Notes: a model not told the origin generated them from the letters alone. DNA of 63,681 nt, filler included, from Cercozoa sp. M6MM (GCA_040357565.1; 7 parts of 7 records of this genome joined end to end with filler, not necessarily neighbours in it); one strand, 5' to 3'. Positions 20,382-34,300 are shown, numbered from the whole stretch's first letter. A program made the numbers and translations.

Positions 20382-20601
20382 GTACTTCAATAATATCTAC
20401 CATATACATACAAACATATATATATATATATATATNNNNNNNNNNNNNNNNNNNNNNNNNNNNNNNNNNNNNNNNNNNNTTAATTAATTAANNNNNNNNN
20501 NNNNNNNNNNNNNNNNNNNNNNNNNNNNNNNNNNNTGTGTGTGTGTGTGTGTGTGCATGTGTGTGTGTGTGTGTGCATATGGCAATAAATTGGTGTTGCA
20601 G

Positions 20602-22752: not shown

Positions 22753-23520
22753 CTAGCGGCGGCTGACGCGGTAGGCGATGCGGCCGACGCGGTAGGCGAT
22801 GTAGCCCTTGGCACCGAACACGTACTTGATGGCCTTGCCGATGACCTTCTTGACAACAAACTTCTTGACGCGCTTGAAAGCCTTCTTGAGGAAGCCCTGC
22901 GGCAGCACGATATCGTCGTCCATTTTGGCCATCTCGTCAGCAAATTCAATCTCAGTCTCAAGCTTAATCTCCTCCAGAGCCTACACAGAACAGTTTTAGT
23001 GACTACTCACAGAAACGCAAAAGACGAGATTACCTCAGAGGCGATCTGCGAGGCAATGTCAAGCTGCACACCCTCAACCGGGAGGATCTCGGCGTCAAGC
23101 GAGTCGCGCAGACCCGACGCCTGCACGTCGAACGACTGCAGGATCGCATCGTTAATGGCGCCCATGATGGCCTCATCGGTGTCGTCGTCGTTCTCGATCT
23201 CCGCATCAATGTCGAGCTAATTCAGCAAACGCCCATCAATAAAAATACCTACCTTATAGTATTGAGAAAAAGTCTACCGAAGCCTGAAGCGCGATCATGT
23301 CGAGCACAGCGTTCTGCTCATCCGACGCCTGCAGGTCGCTGACCGACAGCTCGAGGCTCTGCCAACACCGACACATTTGTTTATTGGGAAGCGTATTCCT
23401 CGTGACATTTGTCTACAATACCTCAGCCTGGGCGAGGCCGTACTCCAGCTCATCGATCGGACGAGCGATGACGGCGCTGGCTGCGGCAACAATGGCCGTC
23501 AGAGCAAGCAGCAGCTTCAT
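22753..23520 (-). CDS. Secreted prepropeptide (196 aa): signal peptide + acidic pro-region + C-terminal cationic amphipathic peptide; putative antimicrobial/cytolytic peptide precursor. Exons 23520-23422, 23358-23278, 23216-23034, 22980-22753
   Basis: ATG preceded by an A-run. Three phase-0 GT-AG introns (63, 61 and 53 nt) join to a single open frame ending in TAG. Codon bias is similar to actin. The function is inferred from architecture only. Confidence 0.85.
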
Positions 23521-23706
23521 TTTTTTGATTCTGGCACAACAAAATCACTGCACGACCACCGAACCACAAAAGGAGACAGAAACCAGAACACACCTTTCAA
23601 AGTACGGCAGAACACAACACACACACACTCCAGTGATATTAGAGTGACGCGTGGGGGAACAAGTGCACTTTCTTAACTCGCAGAATTGCGATTGCGTTTC
23701 TTGTAT

Positions 23707-24860: not shown

Positions 24861-26698
24861 CTAGCGGAACGGGTTGCCGGAACCGTACTCGTGGTCGTCC
24901 TTGTATGCGTCCCAGGCCTGATCCTCCTTGCGCTTGCGCTCGAGCTCCTCCTCGGTCATGTCGTCCTCGTCCTTCTCCTCGGGTGGTCTGCCGTCCATAA
25001 ATAAAAATAAATAAATAAATATAATTTTTAATACATATATATATATATATATATAAAATGCAGGTATAGTGTATAAGCATATGCATACGCCTGCTGCTGC
25101 GGACGGCGGCGCACCATCTCCATCTCGACGTCGAACCACTGCTCGGGCGTCATGAGCCACGGGTTGGCGTTGCGGAAGACGTGCTCGCGCGCGTGTGCGC
25201 GTCGCTCGACCTGCTCGTCGATGCGCGCGTCAAAGGTCTGCACCACCGACGGTTTCTGAGGCCGGCGTTTCTCCTGCAGCTCCCTCATCTGAGCTTCGAC
25301 CTGCGCAACGATGTCGACCTCTCCGTGTGTCTCGTCGTGTGTCTGCTCATGTGTCTGACCGGGCGGGTCGATGCGCACAACCTTGATCGGTCGCTTGGCC
25401 TTGGCACTCTCGCGCACGCGCATGTCGTCATTCTCCAAGGCTGCACGCGGGTCCGACGGATGCAGCGGCCGTGCTGCATTCCATTTGCGTTTGGTAGTAT
25501 GTGTGAGGGAGGGTGCGGAAAGGGTAGGATGCAAAGGGTAGGGTGCAAAAAGGGTAGGATGCAAAGGGTAGGGTGCAAGGGTAAGGTGCAAAAAAGGGTA
25601 GGGTGCAAAGGGGGGTGCAAAGGGGGTGCAAAGGGTGGGGTGCAAAGGGTAGAGTGTAAAGGGTGTAAAGGGTCGTGTGCACAGAGTAGGCGTATGCAGA
25701 GAAAGTACCCATGTCACGGCGGCCGGAGGAAGCGCCGGCGTGTGCGGCCCGTGCCAGCATGAGTTGCTCACGCAGCGAAGTCTGCAGGAGCTGCATGGCG
25801 TCCTGCGCGGCCTGCACCAGTTCGGCCACGTGCAGCTCGCGTTCCTGCTCGAACTCGTCGTCCTCGGCAAAGGCATCGTCGTCGCTGTCCAATGTCGGGT
25901 CCACGACTGTGCCATCCTGCCTGTCCTCCTGTTCCTCCTCCTCGTCAGCTGGCTCGTTGCTGCGACCGACGCGCACGCTGTGTCGCCACCGACGCCGACG
26001 CAGACGCAGCTCTTGCAGAACCTTCTGCGTCTCCTGACGACGCCGCAGCGCGCGCACTTTCTCCGCGCGGACCGTCGCCGCGTTCGCATGTCCGTGCGCG
26101 CAGGGCTAAGGAGGCACAAAAACTCAGTCTGGGGTAGGGTAAGAAACAAAGATACCCCAGCAGTCTCGGACGGTTCGTCGTCCTGCAGCAAGCGCCGCAC
26201 TGCCCTGACATCCTGTTCTTCCAGAAACTCGAGTGCTTCGGCGCGCTGCAGGAAGCGCCGCGCAAACTGCACACTCATGCGCAGCGACGCCTGCCGCGTG
26301 CGCGGACAGAAACGCCTCTCGCCGCTGCAGTCGCTCATCGCCAGATAAACAAAAAAGGCAAGGAGACACTAAGAACAAAGTGCTACCCGGCATCCACAAA
26401 ACACGGACGCAGCGAGAACAACTCGGCGATCCAAAAGTCCAGCAGAGCAAACGGCAGCACACGCGTGCTCAGCTCCTGCAGTCGCTCATCCGTCGTCAGC
26501 ACACCTGCCGCATCGGCCGCCTTGTGGACTTCGATTGCTTCGCGCAGCAACTCGTCGGCATCGGCTGCTCAAACGGTTTCGATGACACACAGACCAGAAC
26601 CAGAATTGCAAAAAACACGCACCTGACTGTGGTGAAACAACACGCCTCTGTAAGCGGCGCAGACGCGTGCCTAGACTTTCTTCTACACTTTCAGACAT
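24861..26698 (-). CDS. IGBP1: TAP42/alpha4 (IGBP1) PP2A-family regulator; multi-exon
   Basis: C-terminal EDQAWDAYKDDHEYGSGNPFR*, upstream AREHVFRNANPWLMTPEQWFDVE, and a helical N-terminal region. Confidence 0.75.
25520..25672. repeat. Intronic minisatellite of AAAGGGTAGG(A/G)TGC-like units
   Basis: Degenerate tandem units inside a TAP42 intron. Confidence 0.85.
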
Positions 26699-26886: not shown

Positions 26887-29318
26887 ATGACTTCCGAGCA
26901 GCAGTCGGAGCACCTCCGCCGGGTGGTGGAGGTTCTTCGAGGTCCTCGCTTCCGACGCTCATTTTCGATGCTCGAGCTGACTAAAATAAGTGCGGATGAG
27001 TTGCTTAAACTACTAGATGGTACTCCAGTGTTTGTGGCGTGCAATATCACGATTTCACGGTTTTGTAGATGTCCTGGGCGAATTGCGCGGACGGCCGGTG
27101 GAGTGGCGCGACCTGCCAGAGGCAGAGCGGTGGCTTTTGATTTATAATCTCGGCTACAGACCACCAAAACGCGAGGAAGTCGCTGAGAACGAAGACGACA
27201 TGCAGAGCCGACTGGCACGAGGAGATTTCAATGCCGTGCTGTCAGTGCTCGCTTGGCTTCTCCTCAGGGACCAGCAAGGCACGGAGGAGTTGCGCATGCG
27301 AGCGTATCTCGGAGAGTTCTTGAGTGCACCTCCAATTCCGCGCGAGTTTGCAATGCAAGACAGCGTTCAAAAAGAGTTACGAAAGCTGCGAGATCTGCAG
27401 AAACAATTCCGCGAAGTACACCAAGCCGTCGAAGAGTTGCGACAGACGAGCATTGATCTGCACGATGACAGTTTGAAAGGCGACGCTTCTTCCCGCGATG
27501 AGAACGTGACTCCCGGTGAACTCACTGTCGAAGTTCACCAGCTGCAGCATGAGTTCGCGCAGTTGCAGCAACGGCTGACTCAAATGCGAGAGGAGGCCGA
27601 AAGCGGCGACGTTGTCGACGGAACCGCGTTTTCACGCGTTCTAGAACTGACGCGTTCGTTGCGGCAGCAGCAAGAACGACAGCAGGTATACGGGCACAAA
27701 CTAATTAACGATAAATGCTTCGAATACCGTAATGTCTCGCATTAGGACCTCATCTCTTCACTGCAAGAGCTACAAGAACAACTGTCCAAAGCGCAACGTC
27801 ATGCCGCCGAGCAGCACGCATTTTCCGATGCAACTGCAGAGGCACTGCACAGCCTCTTGTCCGATTCGCAGGACATGCCTGGACACGATTTCGTTTCACT
27901 TGTTGAAAATTGTACTCAAATGATGAAGTCTCGTCTTCAACAGGTAGCTTTGCTTTAGAGACCTTATCTCTCCAAATCAATTTGAGAATGACCTTGTAAT
28001 TTAGAACTCGGAGGAAACGCAAAGGTTGCAGCAACGAGAGCATGATATCGCGCAAGTGTTGCAGCAGTACACCGACGGCGGCAGAAGGGCACTCAGTGTC
28101 GACGACATCGTACATGCGGAACAACAAGTCGCAGCTTTAACCGCGCAGGTGCACGAGCAGCAACGAAGACGCGACAGTCGAGACGCGCAGGACGACGAAG
28201 AGCTCGGCTTTTACTTTCAGCGAGCTCGCGATGTGCAGAAACGGCGCGACGAAGCACGTGCACAGTTGGAGAAAACTTTAGCTGAGAGCGACTCACTTCG
28301 TGTATCCGTTGAGACTCGACGTCAGCGGTGCGACACGTTTCGCGTTGAGGTTCGCGGAGAAAGTGTCAGTCCAATGACCAGAGAGGAAGCTCAGTCGTAC
28401 ATACAAGAGCTCTCAAAGAAAACAGCCGGATACAAAGAAAAAAAGACGCAACTCAATCAACTTCGCCAAGCGTTACTCAATCAATCCGAGGAGAAAGAGC
28501 AACTCGCAACGCGACTCAAGAACGCAACAGTGGCACTTGACGAAATCGAAAAACGTTGCGGCGTTGCTGGACTACACTCGATTCAAATGCAACTTACCGA
28601 AGCGGCAGAGGAAAAACAATGTCTGAACGCTGACAAACAAGAGCATCTCGAGCAGCTGAGTCAGCTGGCCGAACAAATCGACAGCGAACTGCGCACTCAA
28701 AAGAGCAAGCTTGCACCTCTGATCGCCTCGCTGAAAAAGAAGCGCGGTGAATTCGCTGCTGAGTACCGCGCTTTCACACAGGAGCGCGACGAGCACGCCG
28801 ATTTGGCCGATCGCATCGCACGCGAGCGAGCGCAACTGAACAAACAGCAAGACAACCTGAACGAAGAACTATCGCAGTTACAGAGCGAAACCGAGCAGCT
28901 CCGAAAGGAGATTGTCGAGATGACCACAAGGCAGCAGCAGGTGGCTCATGACGTAGCCGTGAAGAACGAGTCCGACTCAGCTCTGATCGACGGAAAGTGG
29001 CGTACATACGCCGAGCGATACGAGGCTTTAAGCAAGCAGACTGAACTCGAGGTGAGCGACATGCGAGCTGAGCGCGATGTTCTCATGCGCTCCTTGAAGC
29101 GCAACGAGCAGAAGAAGCGTGGTCTCGAGCACTGGGCTTCCGTGTTGAGTGTTAAATTGACACTCGCGCATCGTAGGCTACAGGCAGCGCGAGAGGACCG
29201 AACCGGAGAGAGCGGGCAGATTGATATCGGTAACTTTACGGCTTTCACACCTTTTGATTGTCTGCAAGGTGTTGCTGTGCACAGCCAACTGCGCGTACTG
29301 ATGACGACACTGTGCTGA
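26887..29318 (+). CDS. IFT81: Intraflagellar transport protein 81; 3' end approximate
   Basis: CH-like N-terminus (VLRGPRFRRSFSMLEL..LLKLLDDVLGEL..LGYRPP..VLAWLL..LRMRAYLGEFL..IPREF..QFREVH) followed by long coiled coils, colinear with IFT81. Confidence 0.85.
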
Positions 29319-29668: not shown

Positions 29669-30414
29669 CTAGTTGCGCAAGCGAGCGGAACGTCTACGCA
29701 GCGCATGTCCAATAACAACTGATACAGGACAGCAGGTTGGATTGAGTTCAGTCATACCGGGTGCCGGGGGGACGAGCAGGTGCCTTCTTCTTGGCGCTAA
29801 CAGTCGCCGTCTTGCGCTTCTTGGTGCCAGTTGTGGTCTCCGCCGACGCTGGCGTCTTTCGAGGACGACCACGGCCACGTTTGGGCTTGGCGGGCGTACT
29901 GGTCTCCTCGACCACCGGCGTTTTGCGAGGACGGCCTCGGCCACGCTTGACTGGTGTGACAGCAGTCTTGGTCTCCTCGGCTGCGGCTGTAGTCTTGCGA
30001 GGACGACCTCTGCCTCGCTTCGGCTTGTCAGTCGTCTCTTCGACTGGCGTTTTTCTGGGACGACCACGGCCACGCTTCGGCTTGTCAGGAGCTTCCACTG
30101 GAGTCTTCCGGGGACGTCCGCGGCCTCGCTTTGGCTTGTCAGCGCTCTCCTCAACGGGAGTCTTGCGAGGACGTCCACCGCCACGCTTTGGCTTGTCAAC
30201 AGTCTCACCCGGCGTTTTTCTAGGACGACCAGGACCGCGTTTCTTGACAGCAACCTTTTTTGGCGCCGCTCCGGCTCGAGTTGTCACCTGCTTCAGGAAC
30301 TGTTGCGTTTCCTGGGGAAACAAATAAATTACAAAAAAGCAGCAAAAGAGCAGGGAGGGGGGGGGGTGAGTCTGTTACCAGAGCTGCCTTGCGTGTGGAA
30401 CGACGAGGCGGCAT
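29669..30414 (-). CDS. HMGA-like protein with 7 AT-hooks; exons 30414-30379, 30311-29758, 29693-29669
   Basis: Seven KRG[RPG]GRPRK motifs. Splicing gives N-terminal MPPRRSTRKA and C-terminal TRRSARLRN*. Confidence 0.85.
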
Positions 30415-31332
30415 CTTTGATCACTCGTCCGTGGCCGGAAAACGACAAAGTAAGTTTAGATGGGAAAAACGCAATCCCTTGCAACAATCTTGTGTGCTCA
30501 GTTGAAAATCACACAGAGCTAACACTCGACTCAGTCGGGCTCTCGCAGACACTTTTTGAGGCGCAAAAAGAACCCAACGATGCCATACTGTGAAGTCAGG
30601 GACTACTCCAGGCACGGCCAAAATACCAAACTGAAAATACGAAAAAGTTGCAATATGATGCAGCTCGGAATACGAAAAATCGAGATAGTTTGGATGTAGG
30701 TTCGTTAGACCCGTAGAGCCGCCTCATATACGTCTAGTCGGCGGTGGTCGATTACGCTTTTAACATATACGTCTAGTTGGCGCTAGTCTGACTATCGCTC
30801 GCGAGGAAGAGTTTGTGGAAGACTGCGACCGGATAAATTGAAATTTACAGACTGACTGCAGCACAACTGATTCTTCTTGCACACTGCCGGCAACGACCCG
30901 CGATTCCACTACATGCTCAGACAGTACCAGCGACTACCGCATGTGCGGAGCACTCGACGTTGTCGCCCGTCTCGTTCAACTGGACTTATCTTAAGTTAAC
31001 CGAGCCTGAGAATGAAAGTGACGTGAAAGAGAACCGAGGATGAAAAAGTTTGGTTTCAATTAGGTTTTAAATTACGGGTAGAACGAATCCAAGTTAATTT
31101 TAGTTGGGTGCGGTGATCAGTTCACGAAACACGAAAATACAGATTCAAGAAACGCGCCGAAAATACCAACAAAAGACGTCCAAACTCTCGTGCCACCAAG
31201 TGCTCTGAGTGCTTCTGTATGAAAGCAGAGTTGTTCCTGGTCAGCGAACACGAGTTGGTTCGAAAGCTAAATACTTGAAAGTTAACCTTGTGCCCTCAAC
31301 AATTTATACCTACGGTTGTCGTTAAGCGTAGG

Positions 31333-34300
31333 ATGAGCGAAAATAGCGGCGGGCGCAACTACAAGTCTCTTCGACGCGAGCAAAATCGCAGAGGTAGCGC
31401 TGCGCTTCGTGAATTCTAATGTAGAGCATTTAACTTTTAAATCACGTGCAAAGGCGCACTGTTGCGAGCTCGAAGGGCAAGAGACTCAGCTGCGAGGGTG
31501 CGAGCGACTGCAGCGAAGCAAGTCAAAAAGAATCAAGTGCTGGCATACTTGCTCCCGGGGAACTCGAAAGCACACGTAGCAAGGCTAAACTTGGCAGGCC
31601 GCGGGATCCTGCACATCCTGCCGCCAGAGCAGCGAAAGCAGACAGCGACGCGGCAATTGATTCCGCGTGCCTTTCAGACAACGCAGTCGCTGTGCTTGGG
31701 AAATAACGAACTGTCCTCGCTCGCAGGAATCGAAGTGTTTCCCGAACTCGTTTCGCTGTCGCTGGCGAATAATAACCTTTGCGATGCTGATGAGTTCAAA
31801 AAGCTCAAGCGACTGTCTCGATTGCGATCGCTTTACGTCTGTACGTCTTACACTGAGGAATCTTTGTTGATACTCTGCATCTTATGCTTGTGTAGCTGGC
31901 AACCCAGTGTGCCACGCGTATCCAAACCTCCGTGCCTTCTTGCTGACCACGATACCTTCCTTGCAGAGCATTGACGGTATCGCAGTCTCTGCAAGTGAGC
32001 GCAAGTTGTCGCAGCAGCTGCTCGAAACCGAGAAATCGCTCCTTCATATCATTCTGCACAACAGTCGGCGAGAACTCTTCCTACAGGATGCAATCAAACG
32101 AACAGCCTTGCATGGAGCACTCATTGCGCACGTTTTTGATCGCATCTCCTGGTTGAACGCTGGGCATCTGCGATTGTGCCGGGCCGCGTTTGACGCCTTT
32201 GATATTGAGCGAGCATTCCGACGACTTGAACCTGTCATCGAACACGCCGTGCTAGGTCGCAACTCATTGTCAGCAAAGGAAATTTGTTGCAGCACCAGAA
32301 GACAAATCGCACGATCCATGATGAAAGCCAAACTGTCGCACCGTGGGAAACAAGGCGAAAACGGGCAACTCACAGAGAGCTTGATACAACTGACAAGCAG
32401 CACGCTCGCAAGCATCATTGCTGAGCAACAGCAGACACTCGCGCAACTGCAGCAACACCTCTTGCAAGTGAGACGAGCAGTGCAGCAGTGCTTTGATCGT
32501 GTCTCACTCCGCGCTTCGTCCGCTGTCGTTGCCAACGCGAGACGAGAAAACCTCCAAAAAGCCATGAATGTGCGAGCTCGCGTCGAATTGACTGCGCACT
32601 TACGATCACCGGCACGAGCACGCAGTTCGAACGGCGAGGATAAGCGCGCCAGTCCTCGAAAGCAAAGCTCGGACACACAAAGCACCACCGCAAGCGAAAG
32701 GAGGGGGGAAAGCGCTGCTTCAACACACATGCGAGCGAGGCAAAGCAGCAAGACTGAGCCTCGATCTCGCAGTTCTTGTTCGAGTTGTACGCAAGTGTCC
32801 GAAATAAACAAACGGCTTCACGAAAGACTGATCGAGTTTCAAGAAGTCAATCAATCGAACGTGAACAGTGCGAAAACTATGATTGACGAACTGCGCTCCC
32901 AAAATGAAAACCTGCAGGCAGAATTGTCCATGGCTCGGAAGACAGTAAGTTCGCTTGAACGCCAGCTCTGCCAAATCAGCGCTCTGGTACTTTTGGTTTC
33001 TGTCAGTGGTTGATGAGGCCGTACTGTTCGTGCGTGACAGAGAGATACGGAGCGAAAAGGTGTTGCTGCAGCGGAAGCGGCTGAGTTTCGTATGCAGCAG
33101 TTGAGGGACGAAAACGACCAACTGCGGGCATGGTTGCATGCGAAAACGCAGGATTTGAATGCTGCGGCGCAAACCATTTCACGCGTCACACAGAGGCAAG
33201 GCGAAAGCGAAAGCACTGCTCTGCAAGCGAAGGAAACACCTCCAACCGACGAGAACTTGCAGACTTCGGCGGTGGAACTGCAGCAAGAAGTGCGCCTGCT
33301 GCGTCGACTGAATGAATCGTTCAAAATGCAGCTCGGTCTCGCAAGAAAGCGACTCGAGGAACGAAACGAAATCGACTGGCTCGACACAAGTCTGCTCAGC
33401 GAGTCGTATGCACGCTTTCAGTTGCGCCGAGACTCTCTCACTCTTTTGCACTTCTTCAAGCGTTGGCGCCGCGCCCGACTGTTACATTTGAGAGGACTGT
33501 CAATGTACGATGCTTTCAGTCTCCTACGATACATAAGCTAACTTTGTATGTATGTGTGTTCGTGAAAGCAGAGCAGAGACACATCGCCGAAGGACGCTAC
33601 ATAACACCTGGGTCTCCATTCGGTCTCTGCGCAGAGAACTCCGACTTGTGGCTGCAGTCAGTTTTTCTTGATCCTTGCACGTTCAGTTGTGTGTTTTGAT
33701 GATCGAGCGTGCGTTAACTGCACAGTACAAGTTTCGTCACGAGATGCTGGTGGCTCGTAACGCAGTTGTCACGTGGAGTCATGTCGCTGCTTCCTCCTTA
33801 CGCTTCGAAAAAGTGACCAATGTAATCTCAAGCAAGCGTGTCTCCAGTGTGCTGCGATTCGTCTTTTCTGCTTGGTCGCAAAGATACCGAAAGCGCGAGT
33901 CTTATCGACAGGAGCTCTTAAACAAAGCAGTCAAGTTCTTCAGTCGTCGCCGATTCACAGAAATGGTTGGACAGGTAAATCACTGAGTCTGCACTCTGCA
34001 GGCACACCATTAGAATGCTGGTTTGTCCCTCCTGCTTAGTGGAAGTTGTGGAGACGTTCAGCGTGTGGACTGACCGAGGAAAGAACACAGCAACTGAGTC
34101 GCCTGAAACAAGGACAAACAGTGCGACTGTGGCAGCAAATGTGCGCAAAGAGTCAGCGAAAAAGAAAGTTCCGTGATACTATGCATCACCTCCACTCACT
34201 TGTCAAGCAACAGAGTCTCAATTGGTGGCGAAATTTGACGCGGATCCTTGCTGCAGAGAATGTTCTCGCTGCACACTCAGAGCAGACCACTGTATCTTCT

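Follow-up and report, generated by a model that had tools for sequence, protein, structure and literature searches.

What does the four-exon gene at positions 22753–23520 (minus strand) of Cercozoa sp. M6MM encode: the precursor of a linear cationic membrane-active peptide, or a secreted protein of another kind? The question was examined within a window of 63,681 nucleotides (the whole stretch of DNA analyzed, seven parts of the genome joined with filler), in which the gene lies on a piece of 17615 bp. Cercozoa sp. M6MM is classified in Apofilosa (Rhizaria), and the GC content of its genome is 53% (PMC11069148). Under the name Lemnamoeba sinaloensis it has recently been described as a bacterivore, and its food vacuoles contain cells of Flammeovirga and Pseudorhodobacter (PMC13746701). 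Strain M6MM is a marine, phagotrophic, bacteria-eating amoeba. An initial annotation of the DNA had proposed a hidden gene for a secreted precursor, in which an acidic pro-region precedes a cationic amphipathic helix of the kind found in dermaseptin-type frog peptides.

Gene structure and codon usage

The gene is read on the minus strand from an ATG at 23520, the first start codon of its ORF and set in an A-rich context, and its exons contribute 33, 27, 61 and 75 residues to a protein of 196 amino acids. Exon 1 (23422–23520, minus strand) encodes residues 1–33 (33 aa). Exon 2 (23278–23358, minus strand) encodes residues 34–60 (27 aa; net charge −5), and exon 3 (23034–23216, minus strand) encodes residues 61–121 (61 aa; net charge −16), including an FDVQASGL motif common to a paralogue. 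Exon 4 (22753–22980, minus strand) encodes residues 122–196 (75 aa; 22980–22756), which comprise the final 28 residues of the acidic pro-region and then the basic tail, and closes with a TAG stop codon (22755–22753). The intervening introns, all in phase 0 and on the minus strand, are intron 1 (23359–23421; 63 nt, GTATTG...GGCAG, GC 0.43), intron 2 (23217–23277; 61 nt, GTAGAC...ATTAG, GC 0.33) and intron 3 (22981–23033; 53 nt, GTAATC...TGTAG, GC 0.40). All three start with GTA after an exonic G and end in YAG, and their GC content of 0.33–0.43 contrasts with an exon GC3 of 0.73–0.85. Retention of any intron brings an in-frame stop within eight codons: intron 1 places one at its third codon, and introns 2 and 3 each cause a frameshift and stops.

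All four exon translations match the public protein MES1912557.1 (hereafter P0001), a 196-aa 'hypothetical protein MHM6MM_004812' from Cercozoa sp. M6MM. The public annotations of M6MM were made with the train, predict and update steps of funannotate, using the authors' transcriptome reads (PMC11069148, PMC13746701). Because the exon model matches the public one, and because funannotate drew on transcriptome reads, the public model provides independent, indirect support for the splicing. The minus-strand reading and the match to MES1912557.1 together bear out the proposed architecture of four exons, three phase-0 introns and 196 residues. The description of the gene as hidden holds only for a bacterial-style list of ORFs; since its exon translations match MES1912557.1, the gene is not hidden, and it is already in GenBank, annotated as hypothetical without a function.

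Codon usage, counted over the four exons pooled, is strongly biased. The effective number of codons (Nc) is 32, against 47–60 in six neighboring ORFs, with the proviso that Nc is inflated for short genes, and GC3 is 0.80. Codons ending in A are nearly absent: AAA occurs 1/13 times, GAA 1/17 and GCA 1/29, while ATA, GTA, GGA, CGA, AGA and CAA do not occur. Such a bias fits high expression of the gene. The initial annotation had likened the codon usage to that of actin; the strength of the bias is confirmed, whereas for the likeness the piece offers no actin gene.

These observations bear on whether P0001 is a real protein at all. An ab initio prediction may underlie the public model, in which case the locus could be a gene-prediction artefact or an unexpressed pseudogene. 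Against this stand the strong codon bias common to the four open exon frames, the three canonical introns, AT-richer than the exons and frame-breaking if retained, the identity of the protein to a public model from an RNA-trained pipeline, and an alignment to a paralogue that spans both later exon junctions. We consider an artefact or pseudogene highly improbable.

Surrounding DNA

The neighboring ORFs include nothing functionally linked to the gene, and an Rfam scan of the piece was empty. The contig opens with a (TG)20 run (20536–20575), and roughly 100 nt upstream of the ATG, at about 23610–23625, is a GT run. Both fit a genome rich in AC:GT microsatellites, with simple sequence repeats at contig ends (PMC13746701). 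Two tandem arrays, probably repetitive coding regions, were also observed: a 14-nt unit in about 11 copies at 25506–25664, inside a 436-aa ORF (25028–26338, minus strand), and a 57/111-nt repeat at 29987–30230, inside overlapping long ORFs (29669–30593). At 27017–27742 (plus strand), an ORF resembles the calponin-homology domain of IFT81, though its 24 bits (E 5e-5) stay below the cut-off of 27.4; for an organism known from its descriptions solely as an amoeba, a gene of intraflagellar transport would be remarkable. Another ORF, at 31462–31971 (plus strand), narrowly passes the cut-off for leucine-rich repeats (LRR_4, E 2e-6).

Charge layout and the cationic tail

P0001 begins with a predicted signal peptide of 19 residues (23464–23520, minus strand, start codon included), in which 17 uncharged residues, hydrophobic or small, come after an initial MK; by the −3/−1 rule, candidate cleavage positions lie after ASA (residue 16) and VIA (residue 19). 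The 130 residues that follow (20–149) contain 19 D and 17 E against 2 K and 2 R, for a net charge of −32. At the end of this region the charge switches abruptly, the sequence reading ...VLPQ/GF, with no K or R in the 8 residues upstream. The remaining 47 residues (150–196; 22756–22896, minus strand) contain 10 K, 6 R and five Gly, with no D, E or C, and carry a net charge of +16 at 53% hydrophobic residues. Our recounts agree with the composition first reported for both blocks (36 D/E against 4 K/R over a pro-region of about 130 residues; 10 K and 6 R in the last 47). The whole protein of 196 residues lacks cysteine.

The tail is amphipathic, to a real but moderate degree. Over the full 47-mer, the hydrophobic moment is highest (0.50) at about 94 degrees per residue (p ~0.015 against 3000 shuffles); over residues 150–175 it reaches 0.65 (p ~0.006 against shuffles), and in 11-residue windows it rises to 0.8–0.97 at both ends of the 47-mer and dips at the Gly positions. 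At exactly 100 degrees, in windows of 18–25 residues, the amphipathicity of the 47-mer is not significant. The earlier description of the tail as an amphipathic helix is therefore upheld insofar as the moment exceeds that of shuffled sequences, but not at the canonical angle and window lengths. With a net charge of +16, 53% hydrophobic residues (the class spans about 40–60%), no cysteine and an amphipathic helical periodicity, the 47-mer has the properties of linear cationic helical antimicrobial peptides (AMPs), a functional class and not a homology family.

Two tandem 21-nt units, 95% identical, lie at 22759–22801 (minus strand) and encode the C-terminal heptads IAYRVGR and IAYRVSR. A recent duplication was considered and is not needed to explain them, since two equally long units occur in the paralogue and a codon bias this strong is enough to make the DNA nearly identical. 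Their identity may instead stem from codon bias or from gene conversion.

A paralogue with the same block layout

Homology searches were made with single exons and then with P0001. Scoring exon 4 with HMMER against 1.84 billion cluster representatives returned three proteins: P0001 itself, as the best match, P0002 and P0003. P0003 (MES1915549.1, MHM6MM_007477; 240 aa) is encoded in the same genome and aligns to P0001 with 37% identity over 161 residues (BLASTP E 2e-14); on this sequence comparison, we assign it as a true paralogue. The alignment is ungapped across the exon 3/4 junction, and residues near the exon 2/3 junction are conserved.

The block layout is kept in P0003, which has a signal-like N-terminus of similar type, a 115-residue region of net charge −36, a 59-residue region of net charge +27 and then a module with 6 Cys. 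The two halves of its basic region have hydrophobic moments of 0.75 and 0.74 (p 0.002 and 0.0003). They are even more clearly amphipathic than the tail of P0001. Because the paralogue keeps the signal, acidic and basic blocks even though most residues differ, we conclude that the layout is under selection. Sequence conservation is confined to islands: FDVQASGL in the acidic part, and VFGAKGY and Y.VG..AYR..RR in the basic part. The signal peptides show little conservation, and the charge-switch junction differs (LPQ/GF in P0001, VTM/GL in P0003), although the Gly and an upstream DD.V are kept. The initial annotation had anticipated paralogues with a conserved PQ/GFxKK junction and a variable peptide; the single paralogue found shows the reverse, with a TM/GL junction and conserved VFGAKGY and AYR..RR motifs.

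P0001 ends exactly after the invariant RR, which is compatible with dibasic trimming there, while P0003 runs on through further RR pairs into its 48-residue 6-Cys module. The idea that P0001 is a truncated form of the ancestor was rejected, as the frame beyond its stop codon shows no alignment to the C-terminal extension of P0003. The module (residues ~193–240) contains CNTC and CT-x3-C motifs and bears a weak likeness to pacifastin domains, the pattern of which is C-x(9-12)-C-N-x-C-x-C-x(2-3)-G-x(3-6)-C-T-x3-C; its fourth Cys is out of position for this pattern, the Pfam Pacifastin_I match (E 0.0036, 17.4 bits) falls below the 27.9 cut-off, and the match to SGPI-2 in the PDB is similarly weak (E 0.0049). 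Pacifastin-type serine-protease inhibitors are known from arthropods, and a rhizarian member would be unexpected if real.

Word searches with exon 4, with P0001 and with a two-sequence profile identified P0001 and P0003 as the only relatives, in collections that hold few protist transcriptomes, so counterparts in close relatives such as Filoreta or Gromia may have escaped. Viral, prokaryotic-genome and JGI metagenome contigs gave no further relative, and tblastn with the individual exons gave no local paralogue elsewhere on the 17615-bp piece. The third protein, P0002 (CAA7271184.1, 324 aa), is from the fungus Cyclocybe aegerita; its phmmer score (E 4.8e-9) is summed over 5 stretches, and since composition-adjusted BLASTP is not significant (E 3 or worse), homology of P0002 is not supported, and it is taken as a look-alike. 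It is a secreted protein with five Lys-rich amphipathic repeats between acidic spacers, R-D-P preceding each repeat, and looks like a multi-copy cationic-peptide precursor.

Pfam scans of each exon and of P0001, which took in the frog, cecropin, latarcin, cathelicidin and saposin models, gave no family even at E 0.01, only sub-threshold noise; among PDB sequences, the 47-mer likewise matched at noise level (best E 0.77). Accordingly, no structural, AMP or saposin family was matched; a match to a known structural family had been named at the outset as a finding that would count against a peptide precursor. The nearest feature neighbors in the ESM Atlas were Turandot-like proteins (0.79), bombinin precursors (0.77) and, for the 47-mer, dermaseptin-H5 (0.76), which we treat as leads only because these scores lie below the level often reached by shuffled proteins.

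Structure prediction

AlphaFold2, run with a two-sequence alignment, predicts P0001 to be all-helical, with helices at residues 46–68, 74–100, 108–139, 151–175 and 178–195. The predicted break between the last two falls at the FG of the conserved FGAKGY motif. Mean pLDDT is 70 and pTM 0.66, with pLDDT of about 90 over residues 120–170, but the prediction is fragile: pLDDT exceeds 60 in only 2/5 models and ranges from 70 to 38 between them. For P0003, the prediction was poor (pLDDT 42). Foldseek with P0001 against the PDB returned nothing at E 0.001 or better, and an exhaustive structural search returned generic long helical bundles (best Z 9.3, the MxB/dynamin stalk), where helical bundles reach a Z of up to about 13 non-specifically. 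An uncontrolled complex prediction for pro-region residues 36–149 against the tail (150–196) gave a score of 0.01 and no verdict, and counts neither way on masking.

Possibly, then, P0001 is an unprocessed, folded, secreted helical bundle in which acidic and basic helices are permanently zipped together and which has a non-killing role, for instance as a component of the cell coat or of adhesion, a binder of lipids or polyanions, or a stress-type secreted helical protein. The predicted model places the basic helices in the confident part of the assembly, and both the fold search, which yields only long helical bundles, and the nearest Atlas cluster, the Turandot-like secreted helical proteins, a lead only, point in the same direction. 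So do the lack of a processing motif at the charge switch, the conserved motif within the basic part and the internal position of that part in P0003. The confidence of the model, however, derives from an alignment of two sequences, varies from model to model and is not reproduced for P0003, the best Z is of the non-specific kind, and the extreme segregation of charge into two blocks in both paralogues is a mark of masked cationic effectors. We regard a permanently folded bundle as a serious possibility, though a minority one.

Proposed function

We propose, at about an even chance, that P0001 carries a linear, cationic and membrane-active peptide in charge-masked precursor form, one that arose independently of the animal families. 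The signal peptide would direct the product to the secretory or endolysosomal route, as a secreted or vacuolar precursor. There, the 130-residue, predicted helical, anionic pro-region (net −32) would electrostatically mask the 47-residue helix–hinge–helix tail (+16). Unmasking could come about if a protease cut close to the charge switch (around G150), or if the many carboxylates became protonated as the food vacuole acidified. The freed basic segment would then bind and permeabilize anionic membranes; bacteria, whether ingested or in the surroundings, would be the most plausible target. Such a peptide would work like the linear cationic antimicrobial and cytolytic peptides of animals without being homologous to them, and may be a lineage-restricted invention of this rhizarian amoeba.

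We favor a precursor because the block layout is kept in a paralogue of only 37% identity, the gene is strongly codon-biased and the organism is a phagotrophic bacterivore. Several findings count against it. No dibasic or other recognizable processing site is present at the charge switch. Conservation peaks within the putative mature peptide, the reverse of the frog-type AMP families. In P0003 the basic region is internal, with the 6-Cys module after it. Net charges of +16 (P0001) and +27 (P0003) exceed those of most lytic peptides and would suit the binding of polyanions, such as nucleic acid or polysaccharide. Each of these four points favors the folded-protein alternative, and it is because of them that we place the precursor no higher than even. 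The family, moreover, has two members only in the collections searched. A middle position, at present only an idea, is that unmasking is driven by acidification, acting on the 36 carboxylates, and not by cleavage. The fuller version of the proposal, to which we give somewhat less than an even chance, has rhizarian amoebae independently evolving a linear, Cys-free cationic effector, kept masked by a very long, helical and anionic pro-domain; its unmasking would need no basic site of the classical kind and might come about by vacuole acidification as well as by proteolysis.

The target of such a peptide might also be eukaryotic. Arachnid venoms contain long (40–48 aa), highly charged helix–hinge–helix peptides that are cytolytic as well as antimicrobial, and the masked helix of P0001 could likewise be a cytolysin against fish gill epithelium or other protists, used for tissue damage or in competition. 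A very high charge combined with moderate hydrophobicity, in contrast, usually favors anionic bacterial membranes over the zwitterionic membranes of animals. The biology of the strain can be read either way: it is amphizoic and comes from triggerfish gills (PMC11069148, PMC13746701), but the amoeba grows as a bacterivore in culture (PMC13746701). A cytolysin directed at eukaryotic cells seems to us unlikely.

A further alternative, drawn by analogy, is that P0001 is cargo of dense secretory granules or extrusomes; its charge blocks would drive condensation and packing, and it would be processed like the granule-lattice proproteins of ciliates. The predicted signal peptide, the highly acidic helical region and the strong codon bias would suit such cargo, and dense bodies and unidentified packed-tubule structures have been described in Lemnamoeba sinaloensis (PMC13746701). 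Set against this, Pfam reveals no similarity to any known granule-lattice family, proteins of that kind have no such amphipathic basic tail, and the argument is one of analogy throughout. We judge granule cargo very unlikely.

Comparison with known systems

The proposal that P0001 is a masked peptide precursor does not appear in the published accounts of the organism (PMC11069148, PMC13746701). On the sequence comparisons made here, P0001 belongs to no known AMP family; if functional in this way, it would be an independent protist variant of a known design.

A close parallel in layout is with the frog dermaseptin, bombinin and brevinin precursors, which, like P0001, consist of a signal peptide, an acidic propiece and a C-terminal cationic amphipathic helix. 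The acidic part of the frog precursors is thought to neutralize the peptide. In the frog proteins, however, the propiece is about 20–25 residues long and ends in KR, whereas that of P0001 has 130 residues, is predicted to be helical and lacks a basic site at the junction; the KR that directly precedes the frog mature peptide is absent in P0001. The pattern of conservation is likewise reversed: frog families keep the prepro part constant and let the peptide vary, while in P0001 and P0003 the best-conserved motif sits in the peptide. Pfam gave no match to FSAP_sig_propep, Bombinin or dermaseptin, whether with the exons (E up to 10) or with P0001 (E up to 1). The signal, anionic and cationic layout described in the initial annotation therefore stands and is kept in the paralogue, but its simple dermaseptin-type picture does not, given the unconserved junction, the lack of a basic site and the conserved peptide.

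Arachnid latarcins, oxyopinins, cupiennins and the pandinin/hadrurin group resemble P0001 in combining an anionic propeptide with cationic helix–hinge–helix peptides of 35–48 residues. They come from the venom gland and P0001 from a protist, and neither paralogue has the arachnid processing quadruplet (Arg at −1, Glu within −2 to −4): counting back from −1 to −4, P0001 reads Q, P, L and V, and P0003 reads M, T, V and V. The Pfam Latarcin model gave no match on the exons or on P0001. The arminins of Hydra are, like P0001, taxonomically restricted secreted proteins with an anionic N-terminal and a cationic C-terminal part, the latter being the active antibacterial peptide; they form a multi-gene family, against two genes here, and showed no sequence similarity in any search. 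Among fungal proteins, the KEX2-processed repeat proteins, Ece1/candidalysin and P0002 alternate acidic spacers with Lys-rich amphipathic peptides. The five units of P0002 share an FFKKAFKKIKK-type core similar to the first residues of the 47-mer, but P0002 is multi-copy where P0001 is single-copy. Mammalian defensins and eosinophil proMBP carry an anionic pro-domain that offsets their cationic toxic domain up to the point of processing; their mature domains, in contrast, are disulfide-rich folds (defensin and C-type lectin, respectively) with no homology to P0001.

In role, the analogs would be the amoebapores, the naegleriapores and Dictyostelium Apl, permeabilizing effectors that phagotrophic amoebae deploy in acidic food vacuoles. 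Here the likeness is one of function: the SAPLIP fold has six conserved Cys forming three disulfides, whereas P0001 has no Cys and no SapB match. Phagotrophic protists constantly kill bacteria, yet the known effectors with which they attack membranes are nearly all saposin-like proteins, lysozymes or BPI-like proteins.

Set beside all of these systems, P0001 is unusual in its 130-residue, predicted helical propiece, in the lack of a basic cleavage site and in belonging to a two-gene orphan family, one member of which is fused to a Cys-rich module. Should the peptide prove inactive, the two genes would still constitute an orphan family of secreted proteins, seemingly expressed at a high level, from a little-known branch of the eukaryotes. 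If the precursor reading is correct, the 47-mer offers a short, synthesizable sequence and the protein a natural case of a long acidic domain that silences a lytic helix, possibly with a pH switch. The design of signal peptide, acidic propiece and cationic helix would then have arisen convergently outside animals; in the fuller version of the proposal, P0001 would also represent the first linear AMP-type system described in Rhizaria and a counter-example to the saposin-like view of amoebal lytic peptides.
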